A stretch of DNA of 63,344 nucleotides, counting the filler, from Octopus bimaculoides (taxonomy: Eukaryota), in the NCBI RefSeq assembly GCF_001194135.2. It is 6 parts of 5 records of this genome, joined end to end, with 100 filler letters (N's around TTAATTAATTAA, not from the genome) between each part and the next. Parts side by side here need not be neighbours in the genome. Positions count along the whole stretch, not along the records: positions 1 to 20,667 come from NC_068985.1; 5 more parts are not named here. One strand, 5' to 3'. The notes beneath the pieces are model-generated. The model saw only the letters and a program-made list of their open reading frames with translations, had not been told where the DNA came from and made no database searches. The position numbers and the translations under genes are program-made. Shown in pieces: positions 16,521 to 19,609 of the stretch. The first letter of the stretch is position 1. Every line of letters begins with the position of its first letter.

Positions 16521-17143
16521 GGTCTGATTATGTCTCCGTAATTCAGGTGGTTCGGCAAAAGAAAATGGCAGAATAAGAACCAGGCTTAAAAATAAATAAG
16601 TACTGGAATTGTTCGATTAATCCCTTTATGGCGGTGCTCCAGTACGATCGAGGTCCAACAAATGAAACAAAGCAAAAGTAAAAGATAAGAAAAAGTAAAA
16701 TCTAACCATCAAATCTCTCTCAGACCTATCTCGGCTTTTGTCTACCACATTGTCCAGCTTCCTGGATTGTGCCCCTCATGGAATATGTGCAAAATTATCT
16801 GAAGCGGAACTCTGCTATAATAAAAATGTCTTTCCTTTGCACAAGATAGGTTTGGTTACATTAATAGCTTCTGATTTAGGCGCAAAGCCAGTGACTTTGA
16901 GGGGAGCATGTAGATCGATGTCATCAATCCCAGTACTTAACCGATACTTTATTTTATTAAGTTCGATTTCAGCTCTGAAAATAAAGAACAGGAACAAAAG
17001 TGACAAGGAATTTTCTCCGACGCTCTACCGATTCTGCCAACTGTTACAATAATATGAAATTTACGAGAATACAAAGGAAATAATAGTTTTCCATGTAAAA
17101 TTACTTCATTGCTTAACATTTCTATTTACCTTTTCAGACAAAC

Positions 17144-17231
17144 ATGCTAAGGCTCATTCATTGGCTCTTTCTCATATGTGTAGGACTCGGGGTGAGAGCT
17201 GGCCCCCCATATTATTATAGAACACCAATCG
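17144..17231 (+). CDS. First coding exon (signal peptide) of a secreted Kunitz/BPTI-domain protein: MLRLIHWLFLICVGLGVRA-GPPYYYRTPI(E)
   Basis: Pyrimidine tract and acceptor tttaccttttcAG at 17137; exon starts at 17138; ATG at 17144; hydrophobic h-region with G-V-R-A cleavage-like end; strong donor G|gtaagt at 17231/17232; phase 1, joining in frame (G+AG=Glu) to the exon at 19399. Confidence 0.85.
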
Positions 17232-17479
17232 GTAAGTGATCTTGATGAAAGGAAAATTCTTTTTATATCCCTCCCTATAATGCACGACTTCAGTCTTTAG
17301 ATGAATTACACTCATTTCAAGCACACACACACACACACACACACACATAGACATGTATATGTCTGTTTAGTGAAGAAGGAGTAGTGAATACCAGAGTAGA
17401 AATTAATATTTGTTATTTTGGTCGAGTCAGTAATAACTTGCTTGAAGCCCAGAGTAGCAAGAGGCTGAGTCGACCAACA

Positions 17480-17831
17480 TACTACTACTACTACTATTAA
17501 TAATAATAATAATAATAATAATAATAATAATAATAATAATAATAATAATAATAATAATAATAATAATAATAATAATGATGATGATGATGATGATGATGAT
17601 GATGATGATGATGATGATGATGATAATAATAACAACAACAACGACATCAATAATAATAATGATAATAATGACAATAATAATAACAACGACAACAATAATA
17701 ATAATAATAATAATAATGATAATAATAATAACAATAATAATAACAGCAACAACAACAACAACAACAACAACAGTAATAATAATAATAATAATAATAATAA
17801 TAATAATAATAATAATAATAATAATAATAAT
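17480..17831. repeat. Compound trinucleotide microsatellite (ACT/AAT/GAT/AAC)
   Basis: Direct reading. It is the source of the poly-L, poly-I and poly-M ORFs in the track. Confidence 0.95.
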
Positions 17832-18755
17832 TTCTTTATCATCCACTCAGGGCTTAAATGAATAAAAACAATAAGGACGGTACAAACGGTACAGGATGGT
17901 ACAGAGTGGGTTTTGGCGTGTAAAATTCATAAGAAATATAAGAACAAATGCGGAAAAAGTAAATTCCTCAATAGGAGGGCGTACTTCCGAGGGTCACACA
18001 TAGAGAAAGACCACAAAAATTCACGATCACTCGGACCGCCAAGGTCAGTGCCCTCTCACAGTCTTCTCCCTCCAATCTACAGGCGCATACTCAGAGCAGG
18101 CCCATTAATTCGGGTGGTGCTCGTCTCTCTCAGCAAACTGCGTGGAAGGCAGCACTTCCCTCTCTACCTTGATTTTTTCCTCTTCAAGTGAAACCTGAAA
18201 AAGTTAATCAGGTCTTCGCTGATAAGGAAAGTGCTGGCCTTCACTCCTTTCAGACTGGGATGCGGCGGGTAAATTTTCGCAATGGACTCAGCCGATAGCG
18301 GGAACCTTCCTACATGTGATTGCAAGTGTTCGGCATAAACACACAAGTCAACAATGTTCAGACACTGGACGAGGGCGTTCAGGACTGTTTCGTCACCCTA
18401 CGCGCAGCTTGGACAAGCTCGACTGACGGCACGTCCATACCTGTAGAGTCTATCTCGAACTGGCTGTGCTTTCCCGTAGCACTGCCAGGCTAGGGATTTC
18501 TGGAAGTTATCTATGGGCCCTGGACCGAAAGTCCTCCGGAACAGACTGGCCAGTTGATTCTTGTTGACACCCATAGTCACCCAGTGAACGCCATCGCTTT
18601 TGTCTTCCACTAACCTTCTTTGGAACGCCAAGGTGGAGCTTCCACTGATCGTTCTGCCCAACTGGTTGAGGCCTGTAATCGCTTGAAGACATTCCAGTTT
18701 CCAAGTGCTTCCTCTCGATTTTCGTTTGACCCAGGACTGTGGCTCCGACAAGGAT
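17832..18755 (-). mobile_element. L1/Tx1-clade LINE 3' fragment, antisense in the first coding intron of the Kunitz gene
   Basis: Minus ORFs: KSLAWQCYGKAQPVRDRLYRYG...ACPSC (zf-RVT-like) and LINFFRFHLKRK. The 3' end (...gataaagaaat) runs into an (att)n tail. Confidence 0.75.
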
Positions 18756-19398
18756 AACGTATGTCTCTCATTGTCTGTCTGTCTGTCTCTCTCTCTTTCT
18801 GTCTGTCTGTCTCTCTTTCCCTCTCTCTCTCCCTCTCATTCTCTCACTCTCTCTCTCTCTCTCCCTCTCTCTCTCTCTCTCTCTCTCGCTCTCTCACCCT
18901 CTCTCTCGCTCGCTCGCGCTCTCTATTCTTTATATTCTTTATATTATTATGCATAACCATAATTGTTTTCTCGAATGACAGTTCTAAAATACAAACGTAT
19001 TTGCGTGTGGATACACACACACACACACACACACACACACACACACACATATATATATATGCATAGGTATGTATGTGTGTCTCTCTCTCTCTCTTTCTTT
19101 CTCTTTCCCTCTCGCTTTTTCCTCTCACTCTTTCTCTCTCTCTCTCTCTCTGTTACTCTCTCTCTCTCTCTCTCGTCATCTATCTATCTATCTATCTATT
19201 CTTTATTTGTATATATATTATTATGCAGAAGCGCGATTTTTTTCTCGTTCGAATGATGATAGTAGTTCGGATCCTGATTTTTATCATCTTAATTTAGACA
19301 CACATGGATTGAAAATATCAAATTATATTAGTAAGAAGTAAATACAAGTAAATACCAATTTGAAACGAATAAAGAATTTTAATGCTTTGAATTTTTAG

Positions 19399-19609
19399 AG
19401 TGTGGATTACCAAAGGATGGGGGATCCTGCACACTCCCATCCAGTTTACGCTGGTATTTCGATACAAAATCCAGAACATGTAAGACGTTTCAATTTACAT
19501 GTGGAGGAAATGGAAATAATTTCCGGTCTTACGATGAATGCATTGGAGTGTGTACAAATATCTGTTTTTTGCCTATAGGATATGGAACAGGTTGGCAATC
19601 TATTAATAG
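19399..19609 (+). CDS. Exon encoding a complete Kunitz domain plus the N-terminal part of a second Kunitz domain: (E)CGLPKDGGSCTLPSSLRWYFDTKSRTCKTFQFTCGGNGNNFRSYDECIGVC-TNICFLPIGYGTGWQSIN(R)
   Basis: Manual translation from acceptor atttttAG|AG (19398) to donor AG|gtaaag (19609/19610). Six cysteines, RWYFD and CGGNGNNF motifs and the final C-x3-C match the BPTI/Kunitz signature. C-x2-P-x3-G restarts a second domain at 19563. Confidence 0.92.

Follow-up and report, generated by a model that had tools for sequence, protein, structure and literature searches.

The closest solved analogue of the octopus protein treated here is, by predicted fold, SmCI (PDB 4bd9), a tri-Kunitz protein of the annelid Sabellastarte magnifica that inhibits serine proteases besides metallocarboxypeptidase A. 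Boophilin, bikunin and TFPI also carry tandem Kunitz domains (two or three), with a productive P1 Arg or Lys in only some of them, and inhibit coagulation and inflammatory proteases (thrombin, factor Xa/VIIa). The fold is also common to dendrotoxins, conkunitzins, calcicludine and anemone kalicludines; these toxins consist of one domain, come from proven venoms and have been demonstrated to block channels, and one of them, conkunitzin-S1, is without the C14-C38 disulfide. The title of a study of SmCI, as cited in PMC10221039, gives its inhibition of metallocarboxypeptidase A as noncanonical. The DNA analysed here, referred to hereafter as the window, is a stretch of 63,344 nucleotides from the Octopus bimaculoides assembly GCF_001194135.2, the first part of which (positions 1 to 20,667) comes from NC_068985.1. 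Towards the end of that part, two exons on the plus strand code for a predicted signal peptide, a complete Kunitz domain and the start of a second one. They are the 5' half of an already annotated gene, which in itself is already known. The mature part of its product evolves unusually fast between octopus species, and the signal peptide is without amino-acid change.

The following features were identified in this region:

17131-17137, plus strand: acceptor-like ttttcag, near-identical or identical in the O. sinensis ortholog and paralog
17144-17200, plus strand: signal peptide MLRLIHWLFLICVGLGVRA, 19 amino acids (aa), with cleavage predicted at VRA/G from the Kyte-Doolittle profile
17201-17231, plus strand: mature N-terminus GPPYYYRTPI(E), ending at the phase-1 donor G/gtaagt
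17232-19398, plus strand: intron 1, 2167 nt, with GT...AG ends
19399-19609, plus strand: exon 2, supplying the remainder of the Glu30 codon, Kunitz domain 1, the TNI linker and domain 2 as far as its 16th residue
19401-19553, plus strand: Kunitz domain 1, Cys31-Cys81 (PF00014, 54.6 bits for the domain alone)
19563-19609, plus strand: start of Kunitz domain 2, CFLPIGYGTGWQSIN-R, with the remainder in exon 3, past the end of this part of the window
19610-20667, plus strand: 5' part of intron 2, with the first 138 nt kept in O. sinensis and an insertion from about 19748

An earlier note on this DNA had proposed a hidden gene, absent from the open reading frame (ORF) track, made of two canonically spliced and phase-compatible exons that encode a small secreted multi-Kunitz protein. 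Both exons and their GT-AG sites are present as it described them, and the product of the public gene model begins with the same 100 residues. The note's start at 17138 is explained by the conserved ttttcag, which ends at 17137. Read directly from the window, the ATG occupies positions 17144-17146, 6 bases past this motif, and the acceptor-like sequence 5' of the ATG suggests a non-coding 5' exon further upstream. Exon 1 (17138/17144-17231) ends in ...CCA ATC G/gtaagtgat, a consensus donor in phase 1. The first base of exon 2, 19399, follows the acceptor aatttttag, the split codon G/AG encoding Glu, and the exon ends at 19609 in ...ATT AAT AG/gtaaagc, a consensus donor in phase 2. The joined product has 100 aa and reads MLRLIHWLFLICVGLGVRA/GPPYYYRTPIE-CGLPKDGGSCTLPSSLRWYFDTKSRTCKTFQFTCGGNGNNFRSYDECIGVC-TNI-CFLPIGYGTGWQSIN(R), in which the Tyr/Pro-rich N-terminus and the second domain beginning after only three residues, TNI, are found as the note had them. 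Its 19-aa signal peptide is borne out, as a prediction, by the hydrophobic core of MLRLIHWLFLICVGLGVRA (Kyte-Doolittle 9-residue mean up to 2.78) and by the -3/-1 rule, which together gave the VRA/G site.

A Pfam search with the window product returned PF00014 at residues 31-81 (52.9 bits, E 4.4e-14; gathering cut-off 21 bits), in agreement with the complete Kunitz domain that the note had proposed to check against this family, and a sequence search matched it to the multi-Kunitz inhibitors SmCI and boophilin in PDB (E about 1e-15). In a six-frame scan of the first 20.7 kb for the Kunitz cysteine pattern, 19401-19553 was the sole non-repeat match, the remaining ones being translated CA/TG-type microsatellites. 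An Rfam search of this part of the window gave no match. That the ORF track lacks the gene is true to the letter, as the mechanical list contains no plus-strand ORF of at least 60 aa over exon 1 or exon 2. The description 'hidden' stands only for a prokaryote-style track of this kind and fails otherwise, the gene being already annotated as XP_014769044.1 (UniProt A0A0L8HWN4).

Residues 1-100 from the window are identical to residues 1-100 of this 194-aa protein. The gene's own annotated product was found by an exhaustive HMMER search; a word-index protein search gave only a paralog of O. sinensis (P0001). The exact 194-aa sequence occurs in XP_014769044.1, in UniRef100_A0A0L8HWN4 and in one EukProt entry, all from O. 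bimaculoides. It is named BPTI/Kunitz domain-containing protein, or 'actinia tenebrosa protease inhibitors' in the newer RefSeq naming, and no publication or function tied to these accessions was found in the searchable literature. The locus (L002) lies on chromosome CM046605.1 of GCA_001194135.2 (28946719-28972602), to which window positions 7923-20667 are 100% identical, shared assembly gaps aside. Exon 3 is located at L002 15598-15884, ~3.1 kb beyond exon 2, and would fall at 22741-23027 if the numbering of this part ran on; the window's part ends within intron 2 at 20667, where an assembly run of 1232 N (L002 13525-14756) starts. Exon 3 finishes domain 2 and adds the MSV linker, domain 3 and an RNFRR tail, and the frame stays open through the three exons of O. 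bimaculoides. The annotated gene probably specifies a 194-aa precursor with a 19-aa signal peptide, giving a secreted, standard-type extracellular Kunitz inhibitor with three domains. The small secreted multi-Kunitz octopus protein of the earlier note corresponds to this tri-Kunitz product, in which PF00014 matches three stretches.

The predicted mature protein has 175 aa (~20 kDa), is basic (isoelectric point, pI, about 9.5) and contains 16 Cys, its three Kunitz/BPTI domains being linked by the three-residue linkers TNI and MSV. PF00014 was the sole Pfam family above cut-off in the 194-aa protein (164.3 bits over the three stretches; 63.1 bits for domain 2 and 73.4 bits for domain 3). Domain 1 has six Cys with the spacing C8C16C6C12C3C (canonical: C-8-C-15-C-7-C-12-C-3-C), that is, one residue more after C14 in the primary loop and one fewer before C38 in the secondary GG loop, and alignment to boophilin and SmCI identifies its P1 residue as Thr41 (19431-19433). 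Domain 2 straddles intron 2 and has four Cys, C14 being replaced by Gly and C38 by Val, with Trp as P1; the Gly at its second Kunitz cysteine (C14) is a real four-Cys feature and not an error. Domain 3, beyond this part of the window, keeps the canonical cysteine spacing, with Arg as P1. Among 151 retrieved proteins, the spacing was canonical in 926 domains, 123 domains had four Cys, and the 16/6 spacing was confined to three octopus proteins sharing this signal peptide. Cysteine variants as in domains 1 and 2 are tolerated within the Kunitz family.

The structure of the protein was modelled with AlphaFold2 from an alignment of 26 sequences (mean pLDDT, the predicted local distance difference test, 88.1), a prediction of this type from the single sequence having reached a pLDDT of 38. 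The model has a beta-hairpin and a helix in each of the three units. The best whole-chain match in Foldseek was SmCI (4bd9_B; E 5.7e-17, 165 columns, 40% identity), and single solved Kunitz domains were matched with template modelling (TM) scores of 0.85-0.95 and root mean square deviations of 0.5-1 A. SmCI is the top PDB match by both sequence and fold and shares with the octopus protein three Kunitz domains, a length of ~165-175 residues and very short linkers. It differs in that all three of its domains are canonical six-Cys domains, whereas the spacing is altered in octopus domain 1 and domain 2 has four Cys. The whole-chain TM is only 0.35-0.40, and the predicted octopus domain arrangement thus differs from that of SmCI. 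Inhibition of carboxypeptidase A is a feature of SmCI that is not known for the octopus protein. Boophilin, bikunin and TFPI differ from it in their longer linkers, in belonging to other taxa and in having targets without an obvious octopus counterpart. The Kunitz toxins resemble it at a TM of about 0.85-0.9 per domain, and conkunitzin-S1 is present among the sequence and fold matches. In papilin, a large matrix protein, an ADAMTS-like cassette (TSP1 repeats, spacer) and immunoglobulin domains would be expected beside the Kunitz domains, whereas the 194-aa protein has PF00014 only; the RefSeq name 'papilin-like', given to the O. sinensis ortholog, is unjustified by domain content.

This syntenic ortholog, XP_036359006.1 (P0006, 451 aa), is encoded at a locus (L003, on CM016863.1) that stays colinear with the one in O. 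bimaculoides on either side of the gene (86-92% DNA identity). It has the identical 20-aa signal peptide, exon layout, intron phases and unusual domain 1 spacing, but its mature peptide is only about 64-70% identical and its domain 2 has an extra Cys. L003 15224-22285 contains three tandem copies of a 2.57-kb module, 97% identical, which takes in the end of exon 2 and all that follows up to and including exon 3; the 451-aa RefSeq model reads through all three copies and consists of repeated Kunitz modules only, and in one module copy the third domain has lost cysteines. The O. sinensis paralog P0001, annotated as 'bitisilin-3-like', is a 165-aa protein with two domains and the identical 20-residue signal peptide, and its gene has three exons with the same intron phases as the O. 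bimaculoides gene. DNA alignment of the window with the paralog locus (L001) was limited to ~1 kb (16513-17511, 77%) comprising the promoter region, exon 1 and the first stretch of intron 1, and nothing further 3', towards 20667, aligned. The N-terminus GPPYYYRTPIE is highly divergent, with an indel, from HHPDHHDIPSE in the ortholog and HYPRAPSA in the paralog.

Evolutionary rates were compared pairwise between O. bimaculoides and O. sinensis. The signal peptide (60 nt) shows 3 synonymous and 0 nonsynonymous differences, the first 20 aa being identical in P0001 and P0006, and the rest of exon 1 is scarcely alignable, with one indel. For exon 2 (69 codons) the nonsynonymous rate (dN) is 0.267 and the synonymous rate (dS) 0.136, a dN/dS of about 2, with 79.7% nucleotide identity against 92% and 97% in the flanking introns (Fisher p 4e-7); its nonsynonymous difference (pN) of 0.224 likewise exceeds the flanking-intron difference of 0.062 (p 2.7e-7). 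The upstream region and the start of intron 1 are 89-91% identical, and further into intron 1 the stretch 18127-18664 agrees with its O. sinensis counterpart at 91.6%. Exon 3 has a dN/dS of about 1 and 83-84% identity, compared with 92% for its flanks. The claim of acceleration is built on this contrast between exons and introns and not on the dN/dS of exon 2 alone. Since dS is near intron divergence, the excess divergence is nonsynonymous, which makes simple gene conversion by a distant paralog a poor explanation. The 16 cysteines, the core motifs RWYFD and GGN.NNF and the splice sites are kept between the species, and the reactive loop of domain 3, CRGYFPRFYY, is invariant, P1-P6' included. 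In domains 1 and 2, some of the replacements fall in the loop segments with which canonical Kunitz inhibitors touch proteases. Such nonsynonymous-biased divergence would fit an 'arms-race' secreted factor, without pointing to which.

The protein would act extracellularly as a multi-headed secreted inhibitor by the standard (Laskowski) mechanism. With its canonical loop and P1 Arg, domain 3 should block trypsin-like serine proteases, and domains 1 and 2, with their remodelled and fast-changing loops, probably bind other, co-evolving targets, for example non-trypsin proteases from prey or pathogens or from the octopus's own digestive juice, or perhaps another kind of partner such as ion channels; we infer secretion, inhibition and these targets, whereas the gene structure, the match to the public model, the domains, the fold, the orthology and the rates are shown by the analysis. 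Several points weigh against this reading. P1 Thr in domain 1, and P1 Trp together with a lost disulfide in domain 2, are poor fits for trypsin inhibitors, and two of the three domains may therefore not inhibit proteases at all. The public models are computational predictions, the 1.2-kb assembly gap in intron 2 could conceal sequence, and the cleavage site of the signal peptide is predicted from hydrophobicity and the -3/-1 rule. The rates were compared in only two species, and within exon 2 alone dN against dS is not significant (Fisher p 0.29).

The same data can be read in other ways. The earlier note had offered a salivary/venom, egg or immune factor as candidate roles. The protein might be a component of the salivary gland (venom), in which case its Kunitz domains would serve as toxins, such as ion-channel blockers, or would shield other venom proteins. 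Its architecture is conotoxin-like, with an invariant signal peptide, a hypervariable mature peptide and exons diverging faster than introns; the tandem amplification is specific to O. sinensis, a paralog has the same signal peptide, the mature protein is basic (pI 9.5), and domain 2 is without the C14-C38 disulfide, as is conkunitzin-S1. We nevertheless regard a venom role as unlikely. In the papers retrieved on toxins of coleoid posterior salivary glands, those named are serine proteases, phospholipase A2 (PLA2), pacifastin and CAP proteins, with no endogenous Kunitz family among them (PMC4619613), and the sole named Kunitz-domain lead proteins in PMC7693380 are database entries homologous to aprotinin, one of them sp|P00974. 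No endogenous Kunitz family in coleoid or cephalopod salivary venom was found in the searchable literature. The entry sp|P00974 is presumably bovine BPTI. To our knowledge, Kunitz neurotoxins are single-domain peptides and not tri-domain proteins, whereas the octopus protein has three domains.

Alternatively, the gene may serve the animal itself, as an endogenous regulator of its own digestive or haemolymph proteases or as an immune inhibitor of pathogen proteases, a role outside venom to which we would give somewhat less than an even chance. Diversifying selection is common in host-pathogen protease/inhibitor pairs, and domain 3 keeps a conserved canonical loop with P1 Arg. For O. maya, Kunitz 'papilin-like' proteins have been proposed to restrain digestive proteolysis (PMC12032550). 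Self-directed regulators, however, are usually under purifying selection, whereas here the mature exons outpace the introns. Relaxed constraint could also lie behind a dN/dS of about 1-2 if the gene were decaying or mis-annotated, be it a pseudogene or a chimera built from duplicated exons. The dN/dS near 1 of exon 3, the assembly gaps at the locus and the O. sinensis model, which spans three 97%-identical modules with lost cysteines in one domain and contains a stretch with 77% identity to intergenic DNA in translation (window 9700-9765), would agree with decay. We consider decay highly improbable, as the O. bimaculoides frame is open in each of its three exons, the full set of 16 cysteines, the RWYFD and GGN.NNF motifs and the splice sites are conserved, and the signal peptide has 0 nonsynonymous changes. 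Moreover, the nonsynonymous rate is above the intron rate (p 2.7e-7), for which relaxed constraint alone is insufficient.

Candidates for an exon 3 before 20667, inside this part of the window, were rejected. An acceptor at 19789, after poly-T, would give R-IFWYNISQQFS followed by a stop. Kunitz-like fragments in three frames of intron 2 (19846-20070) at first resembled a decayed exon 3, but queried separately, with stops written as X, they gave no Pfam match, 7 of 100 shuffles attained the best tblastn score that they had against the true exon 3, and they lie inside an insertion; they are therefore attributed to chance. This insertion, 19748-20667, is specific to O. bimaculoides and absent from O. 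sinensis, starts at a long poly-T and runs into the assembly gap. It holds a unit resembling a miniature inverted-repeat transposable element, whose terminal inverted repeats of 21 nt lie at 20317-20337 and 20603-20623 and are 90% complementary. Intron 1 contains long microsatellites, ATT/ATG/CAA trinucleotide arrays at about 17480-17830 and CT and CA arrays at about 18760-19180, and intron 1 of the paralog also has a microsatellite at the matching place. Between the two sets of arrays, at about 17850-18750, is a GC-rich element (49%), 91.6% conserved in the O. sinensis intron, with a 117-aa antisense ORF (18398-18751) that ends in ...RDRLYRYG...CPSC, recalling the C-terminus of a retroelement reverse transcriptase, and that had no Pfam match at E <=0.1.

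Upstream of the gene, window 1141-4376 is an inverted copy of 12650-16451 (75-81% identity), a segmental duplication. Window 15-2289 matches L001 599-3794 in reverse orientation at 82-92%, and as this part of L001 lies directly upstream of the P0001 gene, the match points to a probable Kunitz paralog, in head-to-head orientation, just outside the left edge of the window. At 9700-9765 (plus strand), 7 kb before the gene, the translated DNA shares 77% identity with residues 316-337, IRTQTSTNRILLEHSHQNICQV, of the 451-aa model from O. sinensis; this stretch falls within the span of a 255-aa ORF (9335-10102), apparently in another frame, and this ORF had no Pfam match. Because of this likeness, part of the O. 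sinensis model may stem from repeated or non-genic DNA. A broken mariner-type transposase remnant lies on the minus strand at 10617-11267, in two adjacent ORFs matching Pfam Transposase_1 (E 3.9e-8), with a DDE_3 match below cut-off. Assembly gaps (N runs) occupy 1865-1891, 5595-5886, 7021-7922, 13921-14227 and 15249-15850 and most of them have microsatellites at their edges; a number of the long 'ORFs' in the mechanical list are artefacts that arose because N was translated.

The gene itself is nothing new, as RefSeq and UniProt both list it and its inhibitor family is among the best known. Its modest value lies in the evolutionary pattern, a conserved signal peptide beside mature exons that diverge 2-3 times faster than their own introns, and in the amplification of part of the gene in one species, O. 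sinensis; it is a reasonable candidate for screens of tissue expression and of activity in octopus saliva, digestive juice or haemolymph, Kunitz proteins being outside the recognised toxin families of coleoid venoms. A bolder proposal, which we put forward as speculative, is that of a small octopus-specific family of secreted Kunitz proteins evolving in a conotoxin-like manner, with an invariant signal peptide, a C8C16C6C12C3C domain 1, a head-to-head or tandem arrangement and mature exons outpacing introns. If true, such a family could represent a class of cephalopod effectors, acting in saliva/venom or against pathogens, that has so far gone unrecognised, with domains 1 and 2 retargeted away from trypsin-like proteases. 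The fast mature peptide, the family-specific domain 1 and the lineage-specific amplification provide a modest lead for octopus secretion biology.

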